The notes under the pieces were generated by a model that saw only the letters and a program-made list of their open reading frames with translations, had not been told where the DNA came from and searched no databases. The translations under genes were made by a program, and so were the position numbers. From Adineta vaga (taxonomy: Eukaryota; Animalia; Rotifera), in the NCBI GenBank assembly GCA_021613535.1, contig CP075495.1, forward strand, positions 1,178,001 to 1,242,000: 64,000 nt of DNA, given 5' to 3'. How positions within the stretch are numbered: position 1 is the first letter of the stretch; the number at the start of each line of letters is the position of its first letter. This document shows positions 1,833 through 32,691 of this stretch, piece after piece.

Positions 1833-4800
1833 TTATAGAACAGGAAAAATTGCATCTCGAATTTTATATTTCGTTGTAATTATTGATGTATGATTACTTG
1901 CATATAATCTTTGATAAATAACTAATGCACTTTGATAATTAATTAATGCTTGAGTATAATCTGATAATTTAAAATAAATATCACCCACAATAGAATAAAT
2001 AATTGCTGTTGATAGATCTCCTGCTGCTTGTTTATCTAATTGTGATTTAATTAAAAGATGAAAATATTGTAATGCTTCTTTGGATTCTCGTTTTTGTAAA
2101 TAAATATTTGCAATAATAATATAAATCGAATCTTTATTAAATACATTTGATTGTGTTTTTTTTTCTAAAAATTTTTTAAAATATATTAACGTTTGATCAA
2201 GATGATATTTTTCATATAGAATATCAATTGGATTTGATGGTTTAGTTTGTTCATCGTAAAGTATTAAATAATTTGTTATTTGATTTTGATAATGTTTTTT
2301 TAGAAAGATTTTTCCAATCATAATATATGTATTGATAACTGATGTATCTTCTAATGGTCTTCGTTGTGTAATACAATCAATTAAACGATAAAAAAATGAT
2401 AAAGATTCATCATATTCATTTTGTTTATAGGAAATATTTCCTAAGAATTTATAAATTTTTATTAAAGATGGATCATTAAAATATTTCTTCTTCAATTCAG
2501 AATTTAATAATGAAGTAAAATAATTCAATGCTTTATCATATTTTTGTCTTTCTAATGAAATATTTCCAAGAATAAAATATGTTCGATTGATCAATATATC
2601 ATTAGGTGTATGATCTTTTATTAATTGATCAAGATATCTTTCAAAATAGAATAATGATTCATCTAAATGACGTCGTTCAAAATGAATATTATCAATATCT
2701 TTATAGATTTCCATTGTTGATTTTGTTTTCGATGGACGAATACGAGATTTATCAAATGAAAGTAATGTTTCATCGAAATGACGTTTTCGTAAATAGATTT
2801 TACCAATTTTTTTATAAATATCAAATAGAACAGATTGATTAAATGGTTGTCGTCGTAAATGACAACTAAGTAAACGATTATAATAAAGTAATGCTTGATT
2901 TAATGTACGTTTTTTATAATAAAGTTTTGCAATAATTTTATAAAGAATTGTTAAAGAAATATCATCTGATAATTTCTTAACTAATTCATTTTCTAAAGAT
3001 TTATGATAATATTGTAAAGCATGATCGAAATCTTTTTTTTCAAAATAAATATCTGCAATTAATTTAAATGTATCACTTAAAATTGGATTACCAAATGTAA
3101 ATCGATCGATTTCATTGAGAAGTACTTGATGAATATGACTTATCGATCGATCATAATCTTTTTTTTTCAAATAAATATTTCCAATAAGACGATAAGATTC
3201 AGCAATTTTAGGATGATTCCATGTAAATATTTTCAATTGATTTTCTACTGTTTTATGATAATAATATAAAGCTTTATCTAATTCACCTTTTTTTACAAAT
3301 ATATCACCAAATTTGAGATAAGTTTTCGTAAAATCTGAATGATTATTTGGAAGTGAATCGATTTGAATACGATAAGCTTTATCAATTAATTCTATAGCTT
3401 TATCTTGATTTCCAAGTTCAGAATACATTAATCCAATTGCTATATAAGTATAACTGAGATCTGGATGATCAGGACCAAAGATTTTTAATTGTGATTCTAA
3501 TGCTTTATCATACATATCTAATGCTTTACCTTGTTGATTCATTTGTGCATAAACTTTTGCCAAAGATATAAATGTATCAGCAATAAAAGCATGTGCATTC
3601 ATTGGTTGACTACTAAGAGCTGTTTGTAAACATTCTAAAGCTAAATAATAATCTTCTAATTTGAAATAAACATGTGCTAAACCTGAATATGTCATAGCAC
3701 AATCATTACTTGTTGTTTTTAATGCTTTATTATAGAAATGTAAAGCTAAAATATATTCTTTTTGTTTGGTATAAACTTTCCCTAAATCATTCAATGATTT
3801 GGAAATTAATGGATGATTATTTTCTTCGGAATATTCAACTAAACAATCTAAAGTTTTATTTAAATTGTTTATGGCTGATTTATATTCTGCTTTAACATAA
3901 TTAATTTGAAAAAGACCATAATGACAATAGGCAAGTTCAATTGGATCTTTAAATGATTTATTTTCAAGTAATTTTTCATAATGTTCTTGTGCTTGTTGAT
4001 ATTTTTGCATTTGAATAAGATAAGTTCCAAAAGAGATTTGTTTACTCTTGCCATTTAATTCATTATTTAATGTTGATAAGAAATCTTTCATATCAGAATC
4101 ATTATCACCACATAAAGTTAATTTTCCTCTCCAAATTTTCAATTCTTCATCAAACGAAATATCATCAAGACGAAAAATACATCCGAACATAAAGAGAACT
4201 TCTTCATCATCAGAAAATCCACGTAAATGTTTTATATCAGCTAATGGTCGACTTGGACTTTGAATATTGGCATAGATTTCAAATAAAATTGCTGTTAATT
4301 GTTCTGTTGGTGGAGATTGTGTAACAGTAAAATGAAGAGCTTTCTCACGATTAGCACTTGTTGATAGAAATGAATTCATTGATATTAATTGTCCTTGATT
4401 TGATTTCAAACGATTGATTTCATCTTTATGAATAAGTTGTCCACGATAAACTTGAATAATTGATGTTTTCTTTGTTTTTACAAATGTTTTATATTCTTCT
4501 TTTAATTGTCTATCAATATCACGAATTAATGAAGCAAATGCAATAACATCATCAAGATTTTGTAATCTCAATGCTTTATTTAAAAATTTATAAATTGATG
4601 CATCTCTTGTATACCAATAAATAGCTTTATCAGATGTATATTCTTTATCGAATTCCTTGAGAATTCGTTGATCAAATTGATTATCTGGTTTGAAATATTG
4701 ATATAATGTTGGTTTACCTTTGGAAATTGGACTTTTTTCATCCAAAAGATATTCAATAAGAATTTGATAAAGTATAAATTGTCCATTTAATGATTTATGT

Positions 4801-4880
4801 AAACTTTGATTATCTTTCGATGAATAAACAATAGTACAAGTTGTATCATAAAAATCATCAGTACTTTTATTATCAGACAT
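1833..4880 (-). CDS. ADP-ribosyltransferase (R-S-E, toxin-like)-TPR protein, copy 1
   Basis: AIYWYT...LNKALR, VYRGQ, NSFLSTS, SDDEEVLF, followed by ~42-aa TPRs (GPDHPDLSYTY, WNHPKIA). ATG at 4880 is preferred over the non-ATG start at 4916. Confidence 0.9.
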   Translation of the reverse strand: MSDNKSTDDFYDTTCTIVYSSKDNQSLHKSLNGQFILYQILIEYLLDEKSPISKGKPTLYQYFKPDNQFDQRILKEFDKEYTSDKAIYWYTRDASIYKFLNKALRLQNLDDVIAFASLIRDIDRQLKEEYKTFVKTKKTSIIQVYRGQLIHKDEINRLKSNQGQLISMNSFLSTSANREKALHFTVTQSPPTEQLTAILFEIYANIQSPSRPLADIKHLRGFSDDEEVLFMFGCIFRLDDISFDEELKIWRGKLTLCGDNDSDMKDFLSTLNNELNGKSKQISFGTYLIQMQKYQQAQEHYEKLLENKSFKDPIELAYCHYGLFQINYVKAEYKSAINNLNKTLDCLVEYSEENNHPLISKSLNDLGKVYTKQKEYILALHFYNKALKTTSNDCAMTYSGLAHVYFKLEDYYLALECLQTALSSQPMNAHAFIADTFISLAKVYAQMNQQGKALDMYDKALESQLKIFGPDHPDLSYTYIAIGLMYSELGNQDKAIELIDKAYRIQIDSLPNNHSDFTKTYLKFGDIFVKKGELDKALYYYHKTVENQLKIFTWNHPKIAESYRLIGNIYLKKKDYDRSISHIHQVLLNEIDRFTFGNPILSDTFKLIADIYFEKKDFDHALQYYHKSLENELVKKLSDDISLTILYKIIAKLYYKKRTLNQALLYYNRLLSCHLRRQPFNQSVLFDIYKKIGKIYLRKRHFDETLLSFDKSRIRPSKTKSTMEIYKDIDNIHFERRHLDESLFYFERYLDQLIKDHTPNDILINRTYFILGNISLERQKYDKALNYFTSLLNSELKKKYFNDPSLIKIYKFLGNISYKQNEYDESLSFFYRLIDCITQRRPLEDTSVINTYIMIGKIFLKKHYQNQITNYLILYDEQTKPSNPIDILYEKYHLDQTLIYFKKFLEKKTQSNVFNKDSIYIIIANIYLQKRESKEALQYFHLLIKSQLDKQAAGDLSTAIIYSIVGDIYFKLSDYTQALINYQSALVIYQRLYASNHTSIITTKYKIRDAIFPVL

Positions 4881-6094
4881 AATTTCTCTACTAGAAAAAT
4901 GAGAAGAGTCAATCAATAGAAGATCTTTTTTTTAATAAGAACATCTGTCACTTGTAACAATAAAGAAATCGCCTGAAGCGATTGATTATTTTCAACTTTT
5001 ATTGACAGATAGGAGTCGTTTTTATCTTACTTACTTGATATCGATCACGTTAATTAATATATTGAAAATAACATATGAACAATTGTTGAAATAAAACTCG
5101 TAGAAAAATCTAAAACAACAAAATATTTAGTTATTTATTCTACGAATAATAAGAATGACTCTATGTCATTCTTTGATGTTTTTTATGTTGAACAATGTTA
5201 TCAACTGTTTGTTTTGTTGAATGAACATGTTAATGAATCATTTACTCGTGCATGAATGATATCACACAATACAGAACGACAAAAAACTATTCATTAGATC
5301 AATCATTATCATTGATTGTCTATGTATATATCTACGAAAAAGATATTCTATATACGAATGATTCATCCTATAGTAAGAAGATTATCCGTACAGAGAAAAA
5401 AATTGTATTATAGTTAAGATTGATTTATAGGTGAATAAGAAACACATTTGTTTTCTCTCTATTTATGATTAGATAGGTGTTAATGATTACTAGTGAAGAT
5501 TATCTCATTGAGATAAGATCTAGAGTTTTTTTTTATTGTTTAATAATACGACGAAAAAGTGTGTGAGAATTTGCATGTTGATGTCTATTGAGACACGTGT
5601 GTATATGATTAGATTTATTTTCAAATGAACTGGACAAATAGTTCAGTTGGTAATAATTTATTGTTTTAAATTGAACTTTTAATTGAATTCATATGTCCAT
5701 AACGAATTTATTGTCTGTCTCTTGTGGGTTTTTTTTCTCTCTTTCTGTCTACACTAATCACGCGTTTTCTATGAAAATGAACAAATGCATATTGACCCTC
5801 TAGACAAAATGATTTGCACTTCAAACATTGTCGTTTATTTTTTATCAAAATATCTATAAGAATATTAGTAAAAGGTCGTCTTTCTCGCCATCATATGTTC
5901 AATAGTTCACGTCATCCAATCGAAATATCTATTTTCTTTTATCTATATGCGATTATAATTCAAAATTCCTCACATAAGTAACTCTGCTTATAAACTATAT
6001 TTATGTGTAACAAAGTTTAAATCTTTCCGATTAAATCTATTTTTATTAATAAACTAGTTGATCAACTACAAAAAATTAGGGAAAAAAAACCCTG

Positions 6095-9000
6095 TTAAAT
6101 TTGTGGTACAAGAAGTTGTCGAATAAGATATTTTAATTTATCAATTATGGTTTGATCGTTTGGATTAATTCGTTGATAAATTGACAATGCATATCGATAA
6201 TTTTCTAAAGCTGAATACACATTACCATATTTCTTTTCAATATTTCCAATAACAGCATAAGTATTGGCTAAGAAAAGACTTCCACGTGAAGATTTTTTCA
6301 ATTGAGAATTAAGTAAATATTGAAAATATTGTAATGATTGAGAAATATCTTGTTTTTCGAAAAACATATTACCAAGAATTGCATAGATATCTTCCAAAGA
6401 AAATGGTTTAATCGACATATTTTTTGATTTTCTTTCTAAAATTTTATAATAATACATTAAACTTTGTTCTAAATGATGTTTTTCAAATTGATAATTTGTT
6501 AGATTTGGAAGAATTTTATTTTTTGACATTACATTGGTTTGATTTTGATTTTGCAAAGATTTATTTAATATAGAAAATGTTTGATTGAAATCATGTTTAG
6601 CTAAATAAACTTTACCAATGAAATGATAAGCTTCAATAACAGATGGATCATCTTGAGTACGTTTTTTTAATAATCGACAATCAAGTAAACGATTGAAAAA
6701 GATTAATGCTTGATCAAGAAGATTTTTATTTAAACAAATTGTTCCAATTGCTCGATAAATTTTACTTAAATTCGCATGTTCAAGATATTTTCGTGTAAAT
6801 TTTATTGCTAATAAATGTTCAAAACAAGTTAATGCTTGATTTAAATCACCTTTTTCATAGAAAATATTTCCAAGAATTCGATATGTATTACCAATAGATC
6901 GATGAGTTTTAGAAGAAAATTTCAAGTGATCATTGAGTAATTTTTGAAAATAAGTCAATGCCTGATCTAAATGACGTTTTTCAAAATGAATATTACCAAT
7001 ATTATTTAAATCCATCGCAAACTTCGTTTTTTCTTTCGCATAATATGCCAATAGTTCATCAATACGATGCTTTTTTAAATATACTTTACCAATCATCATA
7101 TAAATATTACGAATAATTCCTTCATCAAACGGTTTCTTTTGTAAATGACAATCAAGTAATCGATTATAATAAAGTAATGCTTCACTTAAAAGACGCTTTT
7201 TAAAATATATATTACCAACTATTTCATATGTTTCAGCTAATGAAATATGTTCATAAAGTTTAGTTTGTAATTCATTTTGTAGATATTGAAGATAATAATT
7301 TAAACATTGATCATTATCATTTTTCTCGAGATAAACATCACCGAGTGTTTTATAAGCTTGACTAAGTGATGGATCACCGAGTTTCTTCCTTGTTAATTCA
7401 CTATCAAGAACTTTATGAAAATAAACTAATGCTTGTTTGTAATCTTTCTTTTTTCGATGAGCATTTCCAATTGTGATATAAGTTACAACAATAGATGGAT
7501 GATTCCATGAAAGAGTTTTCGATTGATTATCTAATGCTTTATGATAATAAGATAAAGCTTTGTCTATATAATTTAATTTCATATAAATATCACCATAATA
7601 TCGATAAGTATCTGCAAAATCTGAATGAGTATTTGGAAGAGAATCCAATTGTATTTTATAAGCTTTATCCATTAATTCTAAAGCTTGATTTTGATCATCC
7701 ATTTCAGAATACATCATTGCCATAGCTGAATAAGTATAACTCACATCAGGATGTTCTGCACCGAAAGTTTTTACTTGTACTTCAATTGCTTTATTGAACA
7801 TTTCCGATGCTTTATCTTTTTCATTCATTTTAACATAAACATTTCCTAAATCGATATAATTTTGTGTAATTGAAGCATATGCTGTTGATGGTTGATTATC
7901 GAAAGCTTGTTGTAAATATTTAAGAGAAAGATTATAATTTTCTAATTGAAAATGAATTTGTGCTAAACCAGAATATGTTGTCGATGGAATATTATTAACT
8001 GTTTTTAATGCTTTTTCGTACATGTTAAATGCTAATTGATATTGACTTTGTTTTTTATATATCGATCCTAAAGCGTTATAACATTTAGAAATTAAACTAT
8101 GATCATATTTTGGACAGTTTTTAAATAAATAATCTAATGCTTGTTCGAGATTTTGTATAGCTGATGTACAATCCATTTTTTTCTCATTAACTTGAGAAAG
8201 ACCATGATAACATTGTGCAAGTTCAATTGGATCTGTAATTAATTGATTTTTGAGAATTTTTTCATAATGTTCTTCAGCATCTTTATATTTTTGCATTTGA
8301 AATAAATAAACACCCAATGAAATCAGTCGATTTTCTCCTTCTAATTCTTCGTCCAATGTTGATAAGAAATCTTTCATATCTAAATCAGCATCACCACATA
8401 ATGTTAATCGTAATTTCCAAAGTTGACATTCTTCATCATACCAAACATCATCAAGACGAAATATACATCCAAACATAAAAAGAATTTCTTCTTCTTCAGA
8501 AAATGCACTCAAATGCTTTATATCAGCTAATGGTCGACTTTCACTCTTGATATTCACGTGTATTTCCAATAGAATAGACGTTAATTGATCCGTTGGTGGC
8601 AATCGACTCGTAGCAAATTCGATAGCTTTTGTTTTATTTGAACTTGTAGATAAAAATGAATTCATAGAAAATAATTCACCTTTAGCTGTTTTTAAACGAG
8701 TTAATTCATCTTTACTTATAAATTGTCCACGATAAACAGTAAGTATTGAAGATTTTTGTCGTTTAGAAAATAATTTATGTTCTTGTTTTAATTGTTGATG
8801 AAGATCACGAACTAATTTAGCAAATGCAGTAACATCATCAATATTTTGTGTTCGTAATGCTTTATTCAAAATTCTATAAACACATGTTTCTCTTGTATAC
8901 CAATGAATTGCTTTTTCAGATTCGTATTCATTATCAAATTCTTTCATAACTTTTCTATCACTTGTATTTTCCGGTTTAAAATAACCTAAAATTCCCGATT

Positions 9001-9187
9001 TCATTTCTGATAATTCACTTTTTTCATCCAATAAACGTTCAACAAGTAATTGATACAGAATAAATTGTCCATTCAATGATTTATGCATACTTTGATTATC
9101 TTTCGATGAATATACATTGGTACCCATAGTATCTTCACGTTCACCTCGTGCCAATAAATCATTTTTTACTTGATCTTGTAATATCAT
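6095..9187 (-). CDS. ADP-ribosyltransferase-TPR protein, copy 2
   Basis: VYRGQ, NSFLSTS, SEEEEILF, then a TPR array. Intact 1030-aa ORF paralogous to copies 1 and 3. Confidence 0.9.
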   Translation of the reverse strand: MILQDQVKNDLLARGEREDTMGTNVYSSKDNQSMHKSLNGQFILYQLLVERLLDEKSELSEMKSGILGYFKPENTSDRKVMKEFDNEYESEKAIHWYTRETCVYRILNKALRTQNIDDVTAFAKLVRDLHQQLKQEHKLFSKRQKSSILTVYRGQFISKDELTRLKTAKGELFSMNSFLSTSSNKTKAIEFATSRLPPTDQLTSILLEIHVNIKSESRPLADIKHLSAFSEEEEILFMFGCIFRLDDVWYDEECQLWKLRLTLCGDADLDMKDFLSTLDEELEGENRLISLGVYLFQMQKYKDAEEHYEKILKNQLITDPIELAQCYHGLSQVNEKKMDCTSAIQNLEQALDYLFKNCPKYDHSLISKCYNALGSIYKKQSQYQLAFNMYEKALKTVNNIPSTTYSGLAQIHFQLENYNLSLKYLQQAFDNQPSTAYASITQNYIDLGNVYVKMNEKDKASEMFNKAIEVQVKTFGAEHPDVSYTYSAMAMMYSEMDDQNQALELMDKAYKIQLDSLPNTHSDFADTYRYYGDIYMKLNYIDKALSYYHKALDNQSKTLSWNHPSIVVTYITIGNAHRKKKDYKQALVYFHKVLDSELTRKKLGDPSLSQAYKTLGDVYLEKNDNDQCLNYYLQYLQNELQTKLYEHISLAETYEIVGNIYFKKRLLSEALLYYNRLLDCHLQKKPFDEGIIRNIYMMIGKVYLKKHRIDELLAYYAKEKTKFAMDLNNIGNIHFEKRHLDQALTYFQKLLNDHLKFSSKTHRSIGNTYRILGNIFYEKGDLNQALTCFEHLLAIKFTRKYLEHANLSKIYRAIGTICLNKNLLDQALIFFNRLLDCRLLKKRTQDDPSVIEAYHFIGKVYLAKHDFNQTFSILNKSLQNQNQTNVMSKNKILPNLTNYQFEKHHLEQSLMYYYKILERKSKNMSIKPFSLEDIYAILGNMFFEKQDISQSLQYFQYLLNSQLKKSSRGSLFLANTYAVIGNIEKKYGNVYSALENYRYALSIYQRINPNDQTIIDKLKYLIRQLLVPQI

Positions 9188-9710: not shown

Positions 9711-12700
9711 TTAAAACGGTGTGATAATCTCACGAATATGGAATTTCATATTATTGATTAGACGTAAATTTTTCGGATTCATTTGTTGATATAAAGCTAA
9801 TGATTGTCGATAATTTTGTAGAGCTTTCGGTAGATTTCGTTGTTTATGATAAATTTTTCCAATAACTTCATATGTTTGACCTAATAGTAAATAATCATAT
9901 GGATTCTTTCTATATTGATAATGAAGCAATTGATGATAATATACTAAAGCTTGATTTGTATCTTGCTTTTCTAAAAATAAATTACCAATAATCATATAAA
10001 TTTGTTCTAACGTAAAGTCTTTGAAAGATAGATCTTTTTTCTCAATATGTGTTTTCAATAATGTATAAAAATACAGAATTGTTCGTTCTAAATGACGTTT
10101 TTCTGCATGAATAATTTTCAGATTGACTTTAGAATTGTGTGTTAAATTTCTATTTAAATAATTTGATGTTAAATCAAATGGATTTTTTCGTAGATATATT
10201 TTTCCAATTGTTTTATAAACATTGGTTATGAAAGGATGACCAAATGATTTTAATAATAATTGACAATCAACTAATTGATTAAAATAAATTAATGCTTTGT
10301 TATAATCTTGTTTTTGTAAATAAATTGATCCAATGATTTCGTATAATTCCGATAAAGATGGATCTTCAGGCATTTTTCTATTTAATTTTGTATCTAATAA
10401 TTTTAGAAGATACTCTAATGCTTTATCCGTATTTCGTTTTTCTAAATAAATGCTTCCTAAAATTTGATAAGTTTCAGTCAATGATGAATCAGTTGCTGAA
10501 CGAGTTTGCATTTGTTCTTTAAGATATTTTTCAAAATAATTTAATACTTGATCTAAATGTCGCTTTTCAAAATGAATATTATTAATATCATCATATTTAT
10601 TATTTGATGATTTATTGTTTAATTTATCATAGTATAAGAGAGTATCAGTAATACGTGATTTTTTTAAATATACTTTACCAATCATCATATAAATATTACG
10701 AATAATCGTTTCATCAAACGGTTTCTTTTGTAAATGACAATCAAGTAATCGATTATAATAAAGCAATGCTTCACTTAAAAGACGCTTTTTAAAATATATA
10801 TTACCAACTATTTGATATGTTTCAGCTAATGAAATATGTTCATAAAGTTTAGTTTGTAATTCATTTTGTAAATATTGAAGATAATAATTTAAACATTGAT
10901 CATTATCATTTCTCTCGAGATAAACATCACCAAGTGTTTTATAAGCTTGACTAAGTGATGGATCACCGAGTTTCTTTCGTGTTAATTCACTATCAAGAAC
11001 TTTATGAAAATAAACTAATGCTTGTTTGTAATCTTTCTTTTTTCGATGAGCATTTCCAATTGTGATATAAGTTATTGCAATAGATGGATGATTCCATTGA
11101 AGTGTTTTGGATTGATTTTCAAGTGATTTATAATAGTACGCTAAAGCTTTATCTAAATCACCTATTTTCAGATAGATATCACCAAAATGTCGATAAGTAT
11201 CTGCAAAATCTGAATGCGTATTTGGAAGAGAACTTAATTGTAAATGATGAGCTTTATTCATTAATTCCAAAGCTTTATCTTGATCATCCATTTCAGAATA
11301 CATCATTGCCATAGCAGAATAAGTATAACTAACATCAGGATGGTCAGCACCTAAAAGTTTGATTTGAGTTGCAATTGCTTTATCAAACATTTCGGATGCT
11401 CGATCTTTTCGATTGATTTTTGCAAAGATTTTTCCGATTTCAATGTATGTATTTGCAATCAAGGCATATGCTGTTGGTGGCTGATTTTCTAGAGCTTGCC
11501 GTAAATATTGCAAGGCAAGATAGTAATTTTCTAGTTGAAAATGAATTTGTGCTAATCCGGAATAAGTTGTTGATGGAATATTATTAACAGTTTCTAATGC
11601 TTTTTCATAGTATTGAAAAGCTAAGATATAATTATTGTCCATGGCATAAACTTTGGCTAAATCATTGTATGATTGAGAAATAAGTGGATGATCTTCTTCG
11701 TCGTTATCACAATTTTCTAATAGATAATCAAGTGTCTTATTTAAATGTTCTATAGCTAATTGATATTCTCCTTTTCTTTCATTAACTTGTGCAAGACCAT
11801 GATAACAATAAGCAAGTTCAATTGGATTCTCTGTTAATTTATTTTTTAATATCTTTTGATAAAAGTCTTCTGCTTGATCATATTTCATCATTTGAATAAA
11901 ATAAGTACCAAGTGCAATTAATTGATTTTGTCCTTCTAATTGATTTGCTAAATCTGATGTAAAATCTTTAACATCTGAATCATTTTGTGAACATAATGTT
12001 AAATTTGCAATCCAAAGTTTCAAATTTTTATCATAAGAGATTTGATCAAGATGGAAAATTGATCCAAACATAAACAAGATTTCTTCTTCATCAGAAAATG
12101 CACTTAAATGTCGAATATCTGCATATGATTTTGTTGGTGCATATAAATCAACAACAATTTCTAACAGTATTGATGTTAATTCATCATTAGGTGCTGGTCG
12201 ACTCGTAGCAAATTCAATAGCTTTTCCTCTATTTGTACTGGTAGATAAAAATGAATTCATTGAAATTAATTGCCCTTGAGTCGTTTTCAAACGATTCAGT
12301 TCATCTTTACTTATCAATTGTCCACGATAAACTTGAATTGTTGAAGCATCTTGTTCTTTCACAAATTGTTTATGTTCTTCACTCAATTGTACATCTAAAT
12401 CTTTGATAAAACTTCCAAATGGAATTATATCATCAATATTTTGTGTTCGTAAAGCTTTGTTAAGAATTTTATAAATACACGATTCTCGTGTATACCAATA
12501 GATAGCTTCTGATGAACAATAATTGGCATCGAATTCTTTCATTGTTTGTCGATCATTTTTATCATCAGGTTCAAAATAATTCGTCAATAAAGATTCTTCG
12601 AAAAAATCCGTATTTTTTCCTTCTAAGATTCTTTGAAGAAGAACTTGATAAAGAATAAATTCTCCATTCAATGAATTATGCATGCTTTGACTATCTTTCG

Positions 12701-12779
12701 ATGAATACACATTTGTACCCATCGTATCTGCACGGATATTGTGTTCACCACGATCTTTTTTACGTTCTACTTGGAGCAT
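9711..12779 (-). CDS. ADP-ribosyltransferase-TPR protein, copy 3
   Basis: VYRGQ, NSFLSTS, SDEEEILF, TPR array. ATG at 12779 (MLQVERK) aligns with the start of copy 2. Confidence 0.9.
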   Translation of the reverse strand: MLQVERKKDRGEHNIRADTMGTNVYSSKDSQSMHNSLNGEFILYQVLLQRILEGKNTDFFEESLLTNYFEPDDKNDRQTMKEFDANYCSSEAIYWYTRESCIYKILNKALRTQNIDDIIPFGSFIKDLDVQLSEEHKQFVKEQDASTIQVYRGQLISKDELNRLKTTQGQLISMNSFLSTSTNRGKAIEFATSRPAPNDELTSILLEIVVDLYAPTKSYADIRHLSAFSDEEEILFMFGSIFHLDQISYDKNLKLWIANLTLCSQNDSDVKDFTSDLANQLEGQNQLIALGTYFIQMMKYDQAEDFYQKILKNKLTENPIELAYCYHGLAQVNERKGEYQLAIEHLNKTLDYLLENCDNDEEDHPLISQSYNDLAKVYAMDNNYILAFQYYEKALETVNNIPSTTYSGLAQIHFQLENYYLALQYLRQALENQPPTAYALIANTYIEIGKIFAKINRKDRASEMFDKAIATQIKLLGADHPDVSYTYSAMAMMYSEMDDQDKALELMNKAHHLQLSSLPNTHSDFADTYRHFGDIYLKIGDLDKALAYYYKSLENQSKTLQWNHPSIAITYITIGNAHRKKKDYKQALVYFHKVLDSELTRKKLGDPSLSQAYKTLGDVYLERNDNDQCLNYYLQYLQNELQTKLYEHISLAETYQIVGNIYFKKRLLSEALLYYNRLLDCHLQKKPFDETIIRNIYMMIGKVYLKKSRITDTLLYYDKLNNKSSNNKYDDINNIHFEKRHLDQVLNYFEKYLKEQMQTRSATDSSLTETYQILGSIYLEKRNTDKALEYLLKLLDTKLNRKMPEDPSLSELYEIIGSIYLQKQDYNKALIYFNQLVDCQLLLKSFGHPFITNVYKTIGKIYLRKNPFDLTSNYLNRNLTHNSKVNLKIIHAEKRHLERTILYFYTLLKTHIEKKDLSFKDFTLEQIYMIIGNLFLEKQDTNQALVYYHQLLHYQYRKNPYDYLLLGQTYEVIGKIYHKQRNLPKALQNYRQSLALYQQMNPKNLRLINNMKFHIREIITPF

Positions 12780-13935
12780 TTGGTTTGATTTCGTAGAAAA
12801 AAAATCTTTAAAAAAATGAAAGAATACTTTCACTCAGTCAGACATAACATTATGAGATATATGTATATATATACTCTACTCAACTGTAATGTTGGTATGC
12901 TTGTTAAAATTTCAATATCAATAAGTAGTATAGTCTACTTCTCAGAGAAAAGCATAATAATTTGAGATCATATCATCTATTCCTTAGTTTGGTCACGGAT
13001 GAATCATTGAAATATTCATTTGTCTTGCTACTTATGACACGTACTGGAAAAAGTACTTCTCTAATTATTTATTTTTACTGTATTGATTTGATGTACAAAG
13101 AGTACATTTATTCAATAAGGATAACTTACGAGTTTTCGAACATTAATTCACAAAAAGTTGCAGTTTAGTTCAATAAATAATATCCTATTTTCGACACAAA
13201 AACAAACCTACCTTGATCTAAACTCGAATCAATTCATTTAAACCGAAAAGTACAGTCTATATATTTAGTTTCTTGTCTTTTTTTATCATTATACATATGT
13301 AAATAATTGTCACGGTCGAACATTTGTTGTTAAATAACTTTTTGTAATTAAAGATAAAAAATCTATGATACACATTCTAGTTACGCATATGTTACAAAGA
13401 GAAAAAAACACGATCTTTTTTTTTCTTTTTCATTAGATGTCATAATTAGTTTTCTAAGGACAGATCTATTAAATAAAAAAAATGTATCAAGTATTTCCAA
13501 TGAAAATACGAAAATATACAAATCAAGGTTGTATTTAGTTTTACAATTTGATTTATGCCAGTGAAAGTTATTGAGTTCGTTTATTAACCTTGAGAGAAAA
13601 TCAATCTTGACTCATCAAGTGTAGATATCTGTCGTCATCATTATTCAAGTCAATGGAGACAAAAATAGGACACTATCATTATTATTCGTTTGATTTAATT
13701 GAATATACATATCCGTATCTATATCTTTCAGAAGTATTATTGTTAATCAAAGCAAAAAAAACGTTATTATAGCATATCATTCATCAGTAACTTGTCAACA
13801 TGAATCTTTATATAGGAGATTCGTGGGATAAGCTGGAGACGTTTTCTTTTCTTGCTTATATAGATATAGTACAAGAAATAAAGCATAAGCATTTGATAAT
13901 TATTTACTATATCGACGTACGAAAACAGATCAAAC

Positions 13936-19061: not shown

Positions 19062-19528
19062 TCAAGAAATGATTTCAAACTTCTGAATTCGATTATTTGC
19101 CCAATCAGCAACATAAAGATTTCCTTCCAAATCAAATGATAAACCAGTGGGAAGACAAAGTTGATTTGGTTTATTACCATCTCCGTTTCCACCAACAACA
19201 ATTTCACCAACATTCCTTCCTTTACACCATCGCATTATTCGATGATTCAAACTATCTGATACATAGATTTGTCCCCATTGATCAACAAACAATTCCCTAG
19301 GACAATTCAATTGATTAAGATTATTTCCTTCACCATTTCCACCTGCAACAATTATTCCTTCTTTTGCATCTTTTTCCCATTTCATCACACGATCGTTCGA
19401 ACGATCAGATACATAAACCGATTGTTCATCATCAACAAAGATATAAGTAGAAAAATTGAGTTGATTTAATTGATCTCCTTTTTCATTTCCTTCAGCAACA
19501 GTAATTCCATTTTGTTTGAGTTTTGTTT
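19062..19528 (-). pseudogene. Orphan NHL-repeat exon, 3 blades (internally deleted paralog of the 26373-27265 exon)
   Basis: Same acceptor context (ag|aaacaaaactc, ETKLKQNGITVA) and a near-identical intron block (19627-19688 vs 27293-27356). Blade 1 is fused to blade 4 at NQLN. No upstream effector exon found. Confidence 0.7.
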
Positions 19529-22761: not shown

Positions 22762-23880
22762 ATGAATTTTAAAGTACTTTTCTTCGAACTTTTTCTTTTA
22801 TTACTGACAAAATCACCACTTTATGAAGCAGTGATATGTAGTGGTGTTACTCGAACTGGTAATGCTTGCTGTGGTAGTATAGGTTATTCTTCAGCTACCA
22901 GTGTTTGTTGTAGCGGTGTTGTCCGAACTGGCAATGCATGTTGTGGTAGTACAGGTTATTCTTCATCTGGCAAGGTTTGTTGTAGCGGTGTTGTCCGAAC
23001 TGGAAATGCTTGTTGTGGTAGTACAGGTTATTCTTCAGCTGGCAATGTTTGTTGCAGTGGTGTTCTTCGCACTGGCAATGCTTGTTGTGGCAGTACAGGT
23101 TATTCTTCAGCTACCAGTGTTTGTTGTAGCGGTGTTGTCCGAACTGGAAATGCTTGTTGTGGTAGTACAGGTTATTCTTCAGCTGGCAATGTTTGTTGCA
23201 GTGGTGTTATTCGCACTGGCAATGCATGTTGTGGCAGTACAGGTTATTCTTCAGCTACCAGTGTTTGTTGTAGCGGTGTTGTCCGAACTGGCAATGCTTG
23301 TTGTGGCAGTACAGGTTATTCTTCAGCTACGCATGTTTGCTGTGGTGGTGTTATACAACCTGGTAATGCATGCTGTGGTAGCACAGGTTATTCTTCAGCT
23401 GGCAATGTTTGTTGCAGTGGTGTTATTCGCACTGGCAATGCATGTTGTGGCAGTACAGGTTATTCTTCAGCTACGCATGCTTGCTGTGGTAGTGTTGTAA
23501 AACCTGGCAATGCATGCTGTGGTAGCACAGGTTATTCTTCAGCTACGCATGCTTGCTGTGGTGGTGTTGTTCGAGTTGGCAGTACATGCTGTGGTGACAC
23601 AGGTTATTCTTCAGCTACTCATGCTTGCTGTGGTGGTGTTGTTCGAGTTGGCAATACATGCTGTGGTGGCACAGGTTATTCTTCAGCTACTCATGTTTGC
23701 TGTGGTGGTGTTGTACAACCTGGCAAGGTTTGCTGTGGCAGCATAGGTTATTCTACAGCTACCAATATTTGTTGCAGTGGTGTTATTGGAACAGGCACTG
23801 CTTGCTGTGGTAGCAAAGGTTATTCCTCAGCTACCAGTGTTTGTTGTAATGGTGTTATTCGATCTGGGCTTTCATGTTAA
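22762..23880 (+). CDS. Secreted galaxin-like di-cysteine repeat protein
   Basis: Signal peptide, then about 14.5 copies of the 24-aa unit CCSGVVRTGNACCGSTGYSSATSV. Confidence 0.85.
   Translation: MNFKVLFFELFLLLLTKSPLYEAVICSGVTRTGNACCGSIGYSSATSVCCSGVVRTGNACCGSTGYSSSGKVCCSGVVRTGNACCGSTGYSSAGNVCCSGVLRTGNACCGSTGYSSATSVCCSGVVRTGNACCGSTGYSSAGNVCCSGVIRTGNACCGSTGYSSATSVCCSGVVRTGNACCGSTGYSSATHVCCGGVIQPGNACCGSTGYSSAGNVCCSGVIRTGNACCGSTGYSSATHACCGSVVKPGNACCGSTGYSSATHACCGGVVRVGSTCCGDTGYSSATHACCGGVVRVGNTCCGGTGYSSATHVCCGGVVQPGKVCCGSIGYSTATNICCSGVIGTGTACCGSKGYSSATSVCCNGVIRSGLSC
22834..23877 (+). repeat. 72-bp coding tandem repeat (~14.5 units)
   Basis: ggttattcttcagct recurs every 72 bp. 22981-23124 and 23125-23268 form a near-identical 144-bp higher-order unit. 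Confidence 0.9.
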
Positions 23881-26290: not shown

Positions 26291-26372
26291 TCAAAAAACG
26301 AATTTTTGGTTATAAAAAATATTTTTATTGAAAATAAAAATTATTTTTTTTTGTTCAAATTCAATCGTTTTA

Positions 26373-28457
26373 TCAAGAAATGATTTCAAACTTCTGAATT
26401 CGATGATTGTACACATCAGCAACATAAAGATTTCCTTCCAAATCAAATGATAAACCTTTGGGACGATAAAATTGATTTGATTCATTACCTTCTCCATTTC
26501 CACCAACAACAATTTCACCAACATTCTCTCCTTCATTCCATCGCATTATTCGATGATTCAAACTATCAGCTACATAGATTTGTTTCCATTGATCAACAAA
26601 CAATCCTTGAGGCCAACTCAATTGATTCAAATTAACTCCTCTACCATTCCCACCTACAACAATCGTTCCTTCTTTTGCATCTTTTTTCCATTTCATCACG
26701 CGATTATTCGAACGATCAGATACATAAATCGATTGTTCATCATCAACAAAAATATAAGATGGCCAGTTGAGTTGATTTAGTTTTTCTCCTTTTCCATTTC
26801 CACCAGCTACTAATGTTCCTTCTCCATCGTCTTCTCCAACTTTCCATCTTCTTACTTCATTCTTCCAACAATCAGAAACATAAAGAAATCCAAATTTATC
26901 CATTGATAAACCCCAACAATGAATATTTTCAATAAGAATTTCTTGTTGATTTTGATTCAACCATCGAACTACTCGAGCATTTCCCCAATCAGCAATGATG
27001 ATTGAGTGATTAGATTGATCAACAATCACATCTGTTGGTTCATACAATTGATTTATTCTCTTTCCATTTCGATTTCCACCTGCAATGATTTGTCCATCTT
27101 CCGCATTGTATTTCCAATGAATGATAAGATGATTTCCATAATCAGCAATATAAATATTTTTGTGTTCATCAACAAAGATTCCATAAGGTTCATTGAGTTG
27201 GTTTAATTTATCACCTTTTCCATTTCCTCCAGCAACAGTAATTCCATTTTGTTTGAGTTTTGTTTCTAATAAAGAAGAAAGAGAGAAAAAACAAATAATC
27301 TTTGAATTGAAGTTTTATCTGAAGATATAATTCGAGAAACTTATGAAAAGATTTTACTGGGAAAAAGATTTGAAGATTAAGATCAGTTTGATCTGTTTTG
27401 GAAAAAGAAAATTTCACTTCTAAAAGATATTCAGATATGTTTTTAACCTTATCTCAATTAAATCAAAAATTTAATGATAAAAAACTAAAGAATTTTTTCT
27501 TTGTAACAAATCAAATTATAAGAAATCCAAAGTTTCATTGTATTACTCAATCTTTTCAAATATTTTTGTTCTTTTGTTTAATATTTTCATGGTTTTAAAA
27601 GATTTGAATAAAATTTTCTTAAATGAAAAATCCAATAAACAATATTTCAATAAAATATCAAAAGTCAAATTACCTGAGAGATGATTTGATGCGATATTGT
27701 TAGTTGAAATCATTTGATTAGTTGTTGATATTGTCATTGATTCCATTTGTAATAATGGTGATACAATTGTTTCAAATGGTGGAATCTTTTCACGTAAATG
27801 AATTATAAATAAATCATTTGTTGCTTTCATTTTATCAACAACTTCAAAATAAGTTCCAGGTAACAAAAGAATTTCATTCTCTTTTTTAAAATATGAATGA
27901 GATTGAATTGATTTTCCATATGAACATTCAATGTTAAACACGGTTCTTGTCGAATTATTTCCCATAAATTTTTCAATTTTTGATATTGTTTCTGTACAAG
28001 AACTGATTCCCCACCAGAAATGATCATTATTATATTGATCAGATAAATTTCCTTCGACACCACGCCAAATTATTCCTCGATACGATGGAAGTTTATACAA
28101 AGCTGTGAGAAATAATTTAAGAAAATAAAACCATGGAATTAAATTATTTCGATCTTGTGAACGAAGTTGTTCGTTAAGTAATGTAAATAAACTTGAATGA
28201 GGTTGAGGCCATTGCATTGTATATAAATGAATTGAAGCCGATTCATCTTTTGTTAAACCATCTGCAGGGTTTCTTGAATTTCTCAATGCAATATCAATCA
28301 TTGTATCACAATTATAAAGTAAAGAATTGATCGGTTGAACAGCATCTTTTAATGAAACAAGTGGATAAATTTCATATCCACTAATTGGTGTTAAGATTTG
28401 TTCTGGTTCTTGATCAGCATCAAAAAAACGTTGTGGAATATTTCTTCTTTGAGTCAT
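26373..28457 (-). CDS. NAD:arginine ADP-ribosyltransferase-NHL repeat protein (exons 28457-27674 and 27265-26373; 558 aa)
   Basis: DGLTKDESASIHLYT, IWRGV, WWGISSCT, ENEILL (R-S-ExE). A phase-1 splice G|AA joins it in frame to six NHL blades. Confidence 0.8.
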
Positions 28458-29166
28458 TGATGAATCGTTAAAAGTAGTTTTAATGAAATAAACAATGTTC
28501 GTTTGTAATGGTTGAATGATTTTGTTTGAGTAATATTGTTTTATATATAAATTAGCAAATAGGAAGAAAAGAACGGATCGATAACATATTAAGATTGAAA
28601 GAGAAAACATGTTTTATAATTAAATAAAATTGTTGATAAATAAAGAAACAAAATGAAAATATTTTTCTTTGATAAATTAAATTTCACAAAAGATTTGAAC
28701 AAAATCTTATAATTCAAGATAATCGATATTCTACGAAATATTTTTGATTTAAATGAAGAATTTAAAAAAAAAGATTTTTCAATGAATTTAACAAAATTTA
28801 TAACAATAAAATTCACTAAAATATTTCTTTTCTTTTTTTTCAAAGGTTTAATCATTTCATATATCTACATCGTTTGTATTTCAATTGATTAATTTTCTTT
28901 TATTTCAAAAACAAATATTTATTTGAATATTTAATAGAAACCATCAGTTGTTTCGTTTGTGTTTTCAATGCTTTTTTTAGTTTTTAATTTCATTTGAATT
29001 TTATTGAAATATTTTAAAGAAAAGAAAAACATTAAAATAATAATTCTCATTTGAAAATAAAATTAACATCTTTTGTTTTGATATTTTCAAGATATTTTAC
29101 ATTTGATTTTAGAAAATAATTTGTTTAAATCGAAATTAAGGTTTTATTTGTTTAATTTTCATAATT

Positions 29167-31576
29167 TTATGAATAAATTATTTCAAATTTTTGAATACGA
29201 TGATTCTCCGAATCAACAACATAAAGATTTCCTTCCAAATCAAATGATATACCTTCGGGACTACGACACTGATTTGAGTCATTACCATATCCATTTCCAC
29301 CAACAACAATTTCACCAACATTCTTTCCTTCACACCATCGTATTACTCGATCATTCAAACTATCAGCTACATAGATTTGTTCCCATGGATCAACAAACAA
29401 TCCTTGAGGCCAATTCAATTGATTCAAATTATCTCCTCCTCCATTTCCACCTGCGACAATTATTCCTTCTCGAGCATCTTTTTTCCATTTCATCACACGA
29501 TTATTCTGTGTATCAGATACATAAACCGATTGTTGATCATCAACAAAAATATAAGTAGGAAAGTTGAGTTGATTCAGTTTTTCTCCTTGTCCATTTCCAC
29601 CAGCTACTAATGTTCCTTCTGCATCGTTTTCTCCAATTTTCCATCTTCTCGCTTCATTCTTCTTTGTATCAGAAACATACAGATATCCAAATGTATCCAT
29701 TGTTAAACTCGAACAGTGAATATTTTGAATGAGAATTTCTTGTTCATTTTGATTCAACCATCGAATTACTCGTTTATTTCCCCGATCAGCAATGATCATT
29801 GAGTGATTCGATTGATCAACAATCACATCTGTTGGTAAATTCAATTGATCAATTCTCTTTCCTTCTCCGTTTCCACCAGCAATAATTTGTCCTTGTTTTG
29901 AATTGTATTTCCATTGAATAATACGATGATTATATCTATCAGCAATATAAATATTCATGTGTTCATCGACAAAGATTCCATAAGGGTAGTTGAGTTGATT
30001 TAATTTCTCACCTATTCCACTTTCACCAGCAATAGTGATTCCATTTTTTTTCCGTTTGTTATATTTTAATTCTGAAAAATAACCAAAAGAAATTTTATTT
30101 CCTTGAAATCAAATAGAATTGATACTTTTTTAGTAATATAAAAAATAGGACCTGATTTGTAAATTATTTGTATATGAATTTTTCAAAACTATGTCAGAAA
30201 AAAAATTTTCAAAAGATAAAACAAAGAAAAGATCTTCCTGTCGTTTGTTTTTATGTGTCTCGAGACTGATTGTAAACATTTCATGTTTTCTCTACCTATC
30301 TCGATGGATTAAATGGTTAAAAACTGAGAGTGGATATTTTATCCGACGTTGAATTTTGCACAATATAATAAATAATCGAGATATTATTGACAGAAATATT
30401 TGTTTTGGAAAATCAATAATCACCCTCGAGTGATAAGAAGAAAATTTTGCTCTAAATTAATTTTATGAAATAATTACGAGATCATTTTTCTCATTACAAA
30501 AAATAATAACTATAAGATGATGTTTGATGTTTTAATGTTCGTGTTGATAAACATAAGATGCTTTTTCGAACAAATTATATATTTAATCATTTTATTATTA
30601 TTATTATTCCAGAAATAATAAGAATAAATAAAGACAATAATAACTTTTTAAGTCCTATTTTTTTTGGAGTAACTAAATCAGATTCGAATTCTTAATCCTA
30701 AGTCATTCTCAAAATACAGTTCATACCTTGATTTTCATTGTATAAAAATATATGTTTGTGTTTTAAACAAAGAGTAATATGTGGAATCTGTTTATCCTTT
30801 GATTCTTCTGAGACATCATGAGTAACATCAGCCATAACAAATCGAATATCTTCATTGGGAGTTTTGAAATGTTTTAAAAGATATTTTGTAAATAAACCAT
30901 GTTGTTCTTTATTATTTCCATCATCTGCGACTGTTCCAGGAGGACAAGCAAATGCTATTAATGATCCAGCATTTACAATCATTGGTTTTAGTCCTTGTGG
31001 ATAATTGATTTGTTCACCTCGAGCATTTTGTTGTGATTCAACATTGCGTAAAGGATAAGTTCGACAACAATCTAAGAAAAACATGGTGACGAATGGTTTT
31101 TTATCATTAATTTCATTAAGAAGATCTTGTGCGTTGATTGCAAGTCTTTTCAGATCAGAACCACTTAGTGCAACATTCTCAATAACACCATTCTTTTTCT
31201 GTTCTCTGAAGTTGTCGACTGAAATTAGATAGTTTTGTTCCTAAGAGTCAATCAATATCAAAACTATAGTTTTAACTATTCTAATTACCTCCCATTGTGT
31301 TCCATGTCCAGCAAAATAAAATAAAACCATATCTCCTGTTTCTATTGATGACTGAAAATCAGTGATAGTATCATAGAATTCTCTGTATGTTAGATTTATC
31401 TGTGGTTCATCACCATAAATAATAAATCCGATATTTTTCAACATAGACGCCATTTCTTTTGCATCATTGATTGTATTTGGTAAACGTCTGTTCATAACAT
31501 AATCACTAATTCCAATTACAAGCGCTCTTTTACGACGTAGATTATTTGAAGATATATTTTTGATCGCAGTAGCCAT
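29167..31576 (-). CDS. Caspase-like (peptidase C14)-NHL repeat protein (exons 31576-31289, 31240-30727, 30071-29167; 568 aa)
   Basis: RALVIGISDY, NDA, FYFAGHG (His), NYLI, FLDCCR (Cys), GLFTKYLL, QIP. A 48-bp intron and a phase-1 splice G|AA lead to six NHL blades. Micro-exons in the second intron cannot be excluded. Confidence 0.8.
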
Positions 31577-32691
31577 TAGCAATAAGTTCGATCTATTATA
31601 ACACTATAGTGATTTTCATGATATTTTTTCTAAGCATAATTTCTATATAAAACTTCCAATAGTAAAATCAGTGATATCAATCGGATTAAAAAAAAGTATT
31701 CTAATCTGTGATTGTATGTAAATCTCACTAAACGTTCTCTATATAAAGTAATTTTTAGTTATTTTTTCCAACCATGCGTATCTTTTAAAACATAATAGAA
31801 ATAATAAAAATAAAATATAACTTGCACAGATAAGAAAAGAAAATGCTTTAAGATGAATAAAATCCCTTTATCTATCTATATCACAAATATAAATTATTGA
31901 TTAGAATCGTTTGATAATCAATGTAAAGAAGAACAATTAATGTAACAAGAAAAAGAATTTTTTTTTAGAAAAAACGATGCTTATTAAACATTATTTTGAT
32001 TTCAAAATGGAATAAATAATATGAAAAATTTAATTAAAATAATGATGATTAATTCAAGTGTAAAAGATCCATAATAACTGATGTGGAGGAGAGTGAAAAG
32101 ATTATCCTACTCGAAGAACTTGATTGTTATTGAAGGTGTTGTGGATGATGATCGAACACTTGGATAAATCGAATTTAAATTATCATTTATCAGAATTGTA
32201 GCCATCACAATCGATGAATAAGTTAATAGCTCATGAGCATCTTCAATCATACCCAATTGATATGTATAATATGCTGTGCAAACATAAAAAGCAAAAACAA
32301 TAATGTTCAATTCCAAGCAAGAAAAACATAGTAACTTACCTGTTTATAGTATTTTATATATGTGATAGGACTCAATTGAATTATACTCTGAATCAATATA
32401 GTATCACAGCTTGTTATCTTGTGTATAGTAAAATAGTGAGAACATTTATTTTACGAGTTATTCGTCAAGGAAGTATGTCTTGGTCTATTTTCTGAATTTA
32501 TTAGTTGAATAGGAGCACAAGTTCTTCGTCAAAAGACGGTTCACAATGTTATTCGACCTACAACGTAACAATTTTAACTGTAATACTTTCATATTCGTTT
32601 GACAGATATATTCTGACCGAATACCGGCATTTATTTAGTGAATAGAACTTTATTTTTTGCAAATTTATCGCTAAAATAATAAATCGAATGT

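Follow-up and report, generated by a model that had tools for sequence, protein, structure and literature searches.

NHL-propeller genes with five types of head ahead of a common phase-1 intron in Adineta vaga, a bdelloid rotifer: a possible recognition-plus-effector repertoire

In the genome of the bdelloid rotifer Adineta vaga, two adjacent genes carry unrelated enzymatic domains in front of homologous β-propellers, and the question is whether this is a coincidence of two genes or the sign of a larger system. Both genes lie in a stretch of 64,000 nucleotides, hereafter the window (GenBank assembly GCA_021613535.1, contig CP075495.1, positions 1,178,001 to 1,242,000 of the forward strand, read 5' to 3'; coordinates below count from its first letter). 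Gene A starts with a caspase-like C14 protease and gene B with an ADP-ribosyltransferase (ART). Both end in an exon encoding an NHL propeller, which we call the tail, the part in front of it being the head. A first-pass annotation of this DNA had proposed a combinatorial, exon-shuffled immune receptor family. Our own reading, to which we assign a probability of about 0.6, is that genes A and B are functional members of a very large, cytosolic, two-module family specific to bdelloid rotifers.

Two genes and a junction shared across the family

The two genes are organised as follows (a slash marks an exon boundary).

31289 to 31576, minus strand: gene A exon 1, with the ATG and the N-terminal part of the C14 domain including the catalytic His (FAGHG); Pfam PF00656, 58.1 bits
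31241 to 31288, minus strand: gene A intron 1, 48 nt, phase 0, GT..AG; from the sequence and a match in A. ricciae
30727 to 31240, minus strand: gene A exon 2, the C14 domain continued, with the Cys (FLDCCR), donor ...CAA G (phase 1, G/GTATGA); Pfam PF00656, 57.2 bits
30072 to 30726, minus strand: gene A intron 2, predicted, 655 nt, phase 1; GT..AG ends, TTTTTCAG/AA
29167 to 30071, minus strand: gene A exon 3, six-blade NHL propeller and stop codon; Pfam NHL, 84.2 bits
27674 to 28457, minus strand: gene B exon 1, ART head and Ser/Thr/Asn-rich linker, donor ...TCA G (phase 1, G/GTAATT); Pfam PF01129
27266 to 27673, minus strand: gene B intron, 408 nt, phase 1, GT..AG; spliced out in a contig of read run X6
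26373 to 27265, minus strand: gene B exon 2, six-blade NHL propeller and stop codon; Pfam NHL, 105.8 bits

Gene B runs from an ATG at 28457 to 26373. Its first exon (260 aa) matched the ART profile over residues 63-222 with 45.6 bits, above a cut-off of 22.3, and a low-complexity linker of ~38 aa separates the ART domain from the propeller. The Arg of IIWRG and the ENE triplet (the ExE motif) aligned to YRG and EAE of Tre1 (6DRE); the serine motif, GISSCT, was placed by eye only. By profile and motifs, the head is predicted to be an R-S-ExE mono-ADP-ribosyltransferase. Its best solved relative was the type VI secretion toxin Tre1 (6DRE/6DRH, E 8e-4), and the ART exon used as sole query matched bdelloid proteins and unnamed metagenome fragments only. 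The AlphaFold model of the NHL exon (predicted local distance difference test, pLDDT, 94.5; predicted template modelling score, pTM, 0.92) showed 24 strands, that is, six blades, strand D of blade 6 being supplied by the N-terminal strand. The NHL domains of Thin/TRIM32 (1e-27) and TRIM71 (8e-25) were its best solved relatives.

Gene A extends from an ATG at 31576 to 29167. The C14 profile was split between its first two exons (model positions 1-83 in exon 1 and 99-225 in exon 2, cut-off 21.4), the His of FAGHG aligned to YAGHG of MALT1, and the Cys of FLDCCR fell inside the Pfam match. The best solved relatives of exon 1 were MALT1 and metacaspases. The junction over intron 1, W-E/E-Q-N-Y-L, resembles the WEDQNYLIPID stretch of an A. 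ricciae caspase-NHL protein, and the caspase domain ends within ~15 aa of the NHL junction. The NHL exons of genes A and B are 77% identical in amino acids and 85% in nucleotides. A signal-peptide-like start was found at the N-terminus of neither protein. Both heads scored above the Pfam cut-offs with motifs aligned to Tre1 and MALT1, in agreement with the first-pass description of an R-S-ExE ART and a His/Cys-intact C14 protease; the two co-oriented genes do end, as described there, in homologous single-exon propellers of six blades.

Four read runs cover 26300-31700. X6 covers exons only and is RNA-like; X1, X4 and X5 cover introns and behave as DNA. A contig of X6 joins 27265 directly to 27674, and the ends of the skipped segment read CT..AC on the plus strand, that is, GT..AG on the minus strand. 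Since the contig joins the two positions exactly, the ART-to-NHL splice is real, and this part of the first-pass gene model was borne out. The caspase-to-NHL splice of gene A is predicted, with support from canonical signals, the family-wide acceptor described below and annotated caspase+NHL paralogues. Incidentally, three RNA-like reads of X6 follow gene A exon 1 up to its predicted donor (window position 31290) and then diverge, their continuation resembling, and differing from, the start of exon 2; a paralogous caspase transcript is thus spliced at this site.

In both genes the last head exon ends in G and the NHL exon opens with AA (AA TTA in gene A, AA ACA AAA in gene B). The codon across the junction is GAA (Glu), in phase 1, as first read. 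The same arrangement was found far beyond genes A and B: a phase-1 acceptor was present in ~28/28 distinct NHL exons inspected, behind five head types, in the frame ...TTTAG/AA (or /GA, /TA, /AT), the preceding exon giving the first codon base. Phase-1 donors were read in 7/7 heads, namely those of genes A and B (winA and winB), of the catalogued loci L037, L049 and L042, and of one Rotaria and one A. ricciae gene. They comprise ART, caspase and zinc-finger/coiled-coil heads, the last with the donor AAG A/GTAAGT. The official A. vaga annotation of the ART-NHL paralogue P0058 uses the same acceptor (...INQ/K/TKFQQNG), and the junctions of the Rotaria ART-NHL gene and the A. ricciae caspase-NHL gene are in phase 1. 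The phase-1 junction is a property of the whole family and not a coincidence of two genes. Because phase 1 is also found in Rotaria and A. ricciae, the NHL-joining intron is old within bdelloids. A universal phase-1 acceptor, together with phase-1 donors of the heads, means that any head can be joined in frame to any tail.

Family size, head and tail histories, and the variable propeller face

The A. vaga genome comprises 100.8 Mb in six contigs with ~28% GC. Searched with the NHL exon of gene B, it returned at least 926 candidate NHL exons, and 132/132 of those scored were strong matches; as these are mostly open frames of 300-330 aa, they correspond to single exons. Homology searches were run exon by exon, with L049 and L037, whose short introns are open in frame, as continuous references. 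The upstream DNA was read over 4 kb for 20 NHL exons and over 1.5 kb for 28 more. Five head types were recognised ahead of NHL exons: two ART clades, a caspase, a DED-like domain and a zinc finger with a coiled coil. The second ART clade (ART-2) is ~39% identical to the gene B type. The DED-like heads scored 24-26 bits, under the Pfam cut-off, and their UniRef relatives are named DED. Genome-wide, ART heads gave at least 146 matches and C14 heads at least 63. When the match tables were cross-read for adjacent pairs on the same strand, at least 40 zinc-finger/coiled-coil-to-NHL, 14 ART-to-NHL and 9 C14-to-NHL pairs were counted.

The commonest head, with at least 127 genomic matches, has 173 aa and consists of a small Cys/His zinc finger followed by a long coiled coil. 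Its model showed a zinc knuckle and then helices at 32-65, 71-126 and 131-149 (three to four long helices), and among Atlas clusters the nearest bears the name 'B box-type domain-containing protein'. A sequence search of the PDB gave no significant match for this head. RING was absent from the Pfam results of genes A and B, and the zinc-finger/coiled-coil heads of the paralogues open directly with one small zinc finger. Because the propeller is akin to those of Thin/TRIM32 and TRIM71 and the commonest head is a zinc finger with a coiled coil, the family resembles a RING-less TRIM-NHL lineage in which the head has been replaced several times. Public databases hold such domain combinations under automatic names: hundreds of bdelloid proteins with PF01129+PF01436 and several with PF00656+PF01436. 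Caspase+NHL proteins are annotated in A. vaga (P0121, P0130), A. steineri and A. ricciae; DED+NHL and RRM+NHL proteins are likewise present, the latter in A. steineri (P0053, P0064).

To what extent did heads and tails evolve together? In a maximum-likelihood tree of 30 NHL exons, the tails of gene A (caspase) and gene B (ART) were sisters with 99/97 support, placed inside a clade (100/97) of four ART-linked and two caspase-linked exons. Fifteen near-identical exons, spread over four chromosomes, formed a clade with zinc-finger/coiled-coil, ART-2, caspase and ART-1 heads. For the four caspase rows, four label changes were needed on this tree. Forcing the caspase-linked NHL exons into one clade cost 300 log-likelihood units and was rejected by the approximately unbiased (AU) test (p 2e-56); for the ART-2-linked exons the corresponding value was p 0.0017. 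The nearest paralogues of the gene A caspase head are 55-59% identical only. The synonymous divergence (dS) of the NHL exons was 0.21 between genes A and B, similar to that between B and other ART-NHL genes, and 0.39 between B and its C5 counterpart. The caspase of gene A carries an NHL exon of a lineage that is otherwise attached to ART heads.

The clearest case of tail sharing lies ~0.5 Mb from the window, where the caspase-headed locus L035 and the ART-headed locus L036 have 2574 bp in common at 96.5% identity. The shared tract takes in 1.4 kb of intron, then the NHL exon and its 3' flank, and it stops just downstream of the unrelated heads. This shared tail indicates that tails, with their intron, have been duplicated or converted between differently headed genes. 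A recent conversion tract was not seen between the NHL exons of genes A and B, whose identity is even, at 79-93%. As a whole, the NHL tree is incongruent with head type and the intron phase is not random. The ~28/28 phase-1 acceptors, the AU test, the sister position of the two tails and the L035/L036 tail uphold the idea, already put forward in the first-pass annotation, of a combinatorial family built by exon shuffling.

Some catalogued loci carry remnants or copies of such arrangements. At L032 (G000:C3:16656469-16661644), a degraded caspase fragment stands directly upstream of an ART-NHL gene, and at L005/L033 (G000:C5:1200579-1206966), a stop-riddled caspase fragment stands ~450 nt downstream of one, in a position corresponding to the layout of the window. 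These fragments are relics of earlier head-tail arrays. L024 (G000:C3:107738-111616) and L025 (G000:C5:121198-125076), both near chromosome starts, have identical NHL exons and upstream open frames; either a duplication or conversion between the two chromosomes took place very recently, or the assembly contains the locus twice.

The tails also proved variable in a very particular manner. Among 29 paralogues, entropy peaked in each blade within GNG[x]G[x], LN[x]P[x]G and (A/S)D[x][x]N, the peaks being bracketed, and in the gene B model every blade has these positions in its D-A connection and its B-C turn. Judging from strand order, the D-A and B-C loops would lie on one face of the propeller. 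In the 15 near-identical exons, the ratio of non-synonymous to synonymous divergence (dN/dS) was 1.1-2.3 over the whole exon, at dS 0.03-0.07. At ~26 hot codons of these exons, nucleotide diversity reached 0.52, 0.56 and 0.42 at positions 1, 2 and 3, versus ~0.08 in neighbouring codons and 0.03-0.06 elsewhere. The residues encoded by hot codons are mostly Tyr, Trp, Cys, His, Ser, Gly, Arg, Glu, Asp and Gln.

Two pairs of loci were informative about how these codons vary. L028 (G000:C1:13599985-13603872) and L030 (G000:C3:3635132-3639019) are equal at the first 14 hot codons (blades 1-3) and at only 2/12 of the remaining ones, which marks a break point of recombination or conversion midway along the propeller exon, the two genes being on different chromosomes. 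L040 (G000:C2:713198-718385) and L047 (G000:C2:704545-709732), both ART-2/NHL genes, show 0-1 differences in 1.2 kb of head and intron and 49 in the 890-nt NHL exon, mostly at hot codons; as judged from these counts, ordinary divergence after a duplication cannot produce such a pattern. The simplest reading of the hot-codon pattern is a continual exchange among paralogous exons combined with selection for diversity of contact residues. The term 'sensor', by which the propeller was first described, gains support from the hypervariable D-A and B-C loops and from dN/dS > 1.

Other features of the window

Four further features of the window are as follows.

19062 to 19528, minus strand: orphan NHL exon, a three-blade in-frame deletion form of 154 aa, from its open reading frame and translation
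1836 to 4916, 6098 to 9187 and 9714 to 12833, minus strand: three tandem single-exon ART-TPR genes, ~1030 aa
57671 to 58615 and 58874 to 60877, plus strand: two adjacent ADP-ribosylglycohydrolase genes (PF03747, 211 and 258 bits)
22762 to 23877, plus strand: galaxin-like Cys-rich repeat protein

The exon at 19528 had been listed at first as a third NHL exon with the same acceptor. Its acceptor (19530-19529) and start (19528) hold, in phase 1 as in genes A and B, but it is not a complete cassette, since it has three blades and no head. An in-frame Met and a head exon were sought upstream, and neither was detected. It is 90-94% identical to the last ~180 nt of the gene B intron and 87% identical to blades 4-6, and it is probably a headless relic of a partial gene B duplication.

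The ART-TPR genes resemble gene B in having an ART head and lie in the same window. In contrast with gene B, they are intronless fusions, and their heads, with the motifs VYRGQ, SFLSTS and EEE(V/I)LF, show marginal likeness to the ART-NHL head (E 2e-4). This marginal similarity and the intronless fusion argue that they are not simple tail swaps of the ART-NHL head; they belong to an ART lineage of their own, with a different repeat attached. The two ADP-ribosylglycohydrolase genes are ~30 kb away from four ART genes. In bacteria, Tre1 is neutralised by an immunity protein of the ADP-ribosylhydrolase (ARH) type, and for this reason the two glycohydrolases could serve the ART heads as antidotes or as regulators.

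Between gene B and the orphan exon, the galaxin-like protein matched PF24748 with 335 bits and contains ~12 near-identical CCG..GYSSA units. The spike in GC and skew at 22-24 kb is explained by the presence of this repeat gene.

Possible function, competing explanations and related systems

How might such proteins work? The commonest type of head, a TRIM-like zinc finger and coiled coil without RING, would have been replaced many times by ART, C14 or DED-like heads. The genes stand in tandem arrays, one of them in the window, where heads and tails would be re-paired through unequal crossing-over, gene conversion or segmental duplication whose break points fall in the long intron. The hypervariable loops, with three positions per blade, would form a diversified ligand-binding face, variants of which would be reassorted in blocks among paralogues. 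The propeller would bind a target, either foreign or altered self. An ART head brought onto the propeller-held target would modify it, and caspase-like, DED and coiled-coil heads clustered on a multivalent ligand would be activated by proximity. The DED-like heads found on sister genes suggest such an activation by proximity, as known from death-fold signalling. The action of the head would result in a defence or cell-death output, following a TRIM logic rather than an NLR logic. In short, we infer that the propeller binds diverse ligands and that binding directs or activates the head.

A role in defence or conflict would be the most likely purpose, with about an even chance of being correct. 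It is favoured because the genes are so many, because they show positive selection and because their heads are of toxin or death-fold nature, and an immune function of the ART-NHL and caspase-NHL proteins is plausible on the same sequence features. A possible expression lead, a weak one, comes from the gene ontology enrichment in Nowell 2024 (PMC11258130, Suppl. Data 3): the arginine-ART term is enriched there among fungus-responsive, horizontally acquired candidates of A. vaga (431 annotated genes, 6 differentially expressed, p 4.5e-8). A bolder reading, possible and held tentatively, is that the several hundred NHL exons would constitute a germline recognition repertoire of an ancient asexual animal, with binding faces that stay diverse through templated mosaic conversion and outputs that change through the phase-1 swapping of toxin, protease, death-fold or TRIM-like heads, a counterpart of NLRs devoid of a nucleoside triphosphatase (NTPase). 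It invokes the antibody-like hot codons, rich in Tyr, Trp, Cys, His and Arg, on a frozen scaffold. A stronger version, also possible, would add a dedicated mechanism targeting the hot codons; it draws on L040 and L047, with their 49 changes in the NHL exon against 0-1 in head and intron.

Could the mixed NHL tree arise without any exchange of heads? Head-tail pairs might be old and stable, and NHL exons might have been homogenised by the gene conversion that is frequent in A. vaga, in which case the tree would be uninformative. Blocks of shared hot codons, frameworks that are near-identical across four chromosomes, and the different histories of the L040/L047 segments (head and intron versus NHL) are all as concerted evolution predicts, and the caspase heads nearest to that of gene A are mostly NHL-linked themselves. 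However, the L035/L036 tract spans the 1.4 kb intron up to the head boundary, the even identity between the tails of genes A and B shows no recent tract, and a single acceptor phase behind five unrelated heads requires at least four original fusions. Moreover, replacing a tail by conversion re-pairs a head with a recognition face anyway. We consider concerted evolution as the sole explanation unlikely. Shuffling might also take place at the level of RNA, with the caspase exon alternatively spliced to 27265 or 19528 so that one head would serve several sensors. The first-pass annotation had pointed out that such splicing would keep the frame; it would, but only because all NHL exons have phase 1 in common. 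The exon at 19528 is itself headless. The joint 30727>27265 was unseen in the four runs, as was any other cross-gene joint, and the long-range joints observed link homologous NHL positions with sides of 21-24 nt, as assembly chimeras do. Reaching 19528 would further require skipping 11 kb including gene B and two plus-strand genes, for an exon that is itself truncated. Combinatorial RNA processing thus appears highly improbable.

The family might instead regulate endogenous processes, the NHL domains binding cellular RNAs or proteins, as in TRIM71, Brat or TRIM32, and the heads acting on those, for instance during stress or desiccation. The closest solved NHL relatives are indeed developmental TRIM-NHL proteins, RRM+NHL proteins exist in A. 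steineri, and the two ADP-ribosylglycohydrolase genes of the window suggest reversible ADP-ribosylation. Hundreds of copies, dN/dS > 1 with near-saturated variation limited to the D-A and B-C loops, and Tre1-like ART and DED heads, which are typical of conflict systems and not of housekeeping regulators, are difficult to reconcile with such a role, and we regard it as rather improbable.

We therefore retain the reading of genes A and B as functional members of a large two-module family, possibly devoted to defence, and the following points weigh against it. TRIM71 and Brat use their NHL domains to bind RNA when they regulate development, so a propeller with a head need not mean immunity. The tree and AU tests presuppose the absence of recombination, yet the exons are mosaics, and the groups submitted to the AU test were given their names once the tree was known. 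The catalogue holds 50 loci and is skewed to close relatives of the gene B NHL exon. The joint 30727/30071 of gene A was present in none of the four read runs, X6 barely covering gene A. For the commonest head, Pfam gave a B-box match (ANCHR-like_BBOX) at E 0.34 only, and Foldseek returned nothing at E <= 0.001, the best structures being AN1, a PML B1-box and RING at E 0.3-2. Finally, Nowell 2024 (PMC11258130) counted 101 C14 proteins in A. vaga, and few C14 genes were fungus-responsive there, mostly being down-regulated.

Which known system does the family resemble most? TRIM-NHL proteins (TRIM71/LIN-41, TRIM32/Thin, TRIM2/3, Brat) share with it a C-terminal six-blade NHL module for target binding behind an acting or oligomerising module, and the commonest rotifer head, a small zinc finger and a long coiled coil, recalls theirs. 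In contrast with them, the rotifer proteins were found without RING, the membership of their zinc finger in the B-box class is only putative, and genes A and B have an ART or a caspase-like protease in place of the whole TRIM head. The rotifer family also numbers hundreds of copies with a hypervariable face, whereas other animals have few, conserved TRIM-NHL genes. The first-pass annotation had compared the layout with that of fungal HET/NLR-like proteins. This comparison did not stand: a central NACHT/NB-ARC NTPase was absent according to Pfam, there being no room between head and NHL, so the rotifer proteins are not NLRs. TRIM-NHL proteins are closer relatives, because the zinc finger/coiled coil is the commonest head and TRIM32/Thin and TRIM71 are the best solved relatives of the propeller.

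In evolutionary behaviour, the likeness to fungal NLRs is considerable. According to Dyrka et al. 2014 (PMC4986451), HET-E/HET-D/NWD proteins assort death- and toxin-type effectors combinatorially with C-terminal repeats; the repeat frameworks are highly conserved, show positive selection at a few positions and bear indications of concerted evolution. The rotifer family shares the combinatorial effectors, the conserved framework with selected positions, and the β-propeller with a variable surface. It differs in that its repeats are NHL and not WD40, ANK or TPR, in their joining by a phase-1 intron and in that conservation holds between paralogous genes and not between the repeats inside one gene. 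Fungal NLRs are the nearest described analogue in evolutionary behaviour, and TRIM-NHL proteins the nearest in architecture.

The heads have relatives of their own. Bacterial ART toxins of the Tre1 type have the same R-S-ExE signature, but the rotifer genes lack their secretion or PAAR module. MALT1, metacaspases and DED-caspase signalling share the C14 fold and the His/Cys dyad with gene A, and DED-like heads occur on its sister NHL genes; unlike in MALT1 and DED-caspase systems, gene A has no death domain, Ig or CARD, and its protease is fused directly to the propeller. The C14 family is a bdelloid-specific expansion.

Arkhipova et al. 2013 (PMC3846280) reported expanded NHL and other repeat families in A. 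vaga. In the open-access texts searched, NHL, ART and C14 expansions were found only as passing mentions, and we found no paper on the head-propeller system, the common intron or the hypervariable face. Because the domain combinations were already in public databases, the value of the present work lies in recognising a system and its evolutionary dynamics, and not in gene discovery. From its sequence features, the head-propeller family looks like an undescribed recognition-plus-effector repertoire, possibly an immune one.

Bdelloids have persisted with no conventional sex, which raises the question of how they keep up with their pathogens. Prior work on their defence centred on horizontally acquired biosynthetic genes. 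The family described here offers a different and testable route, in which diversification would proceed by recombination among paralogues, not individuals. It is also a clean natural case of exon-level modularity, with one phase-1 intron serving five head types, and it suggests that, with no NTPase switch, a TRIM-NHL scaffold may become a large repertoire for recognition.

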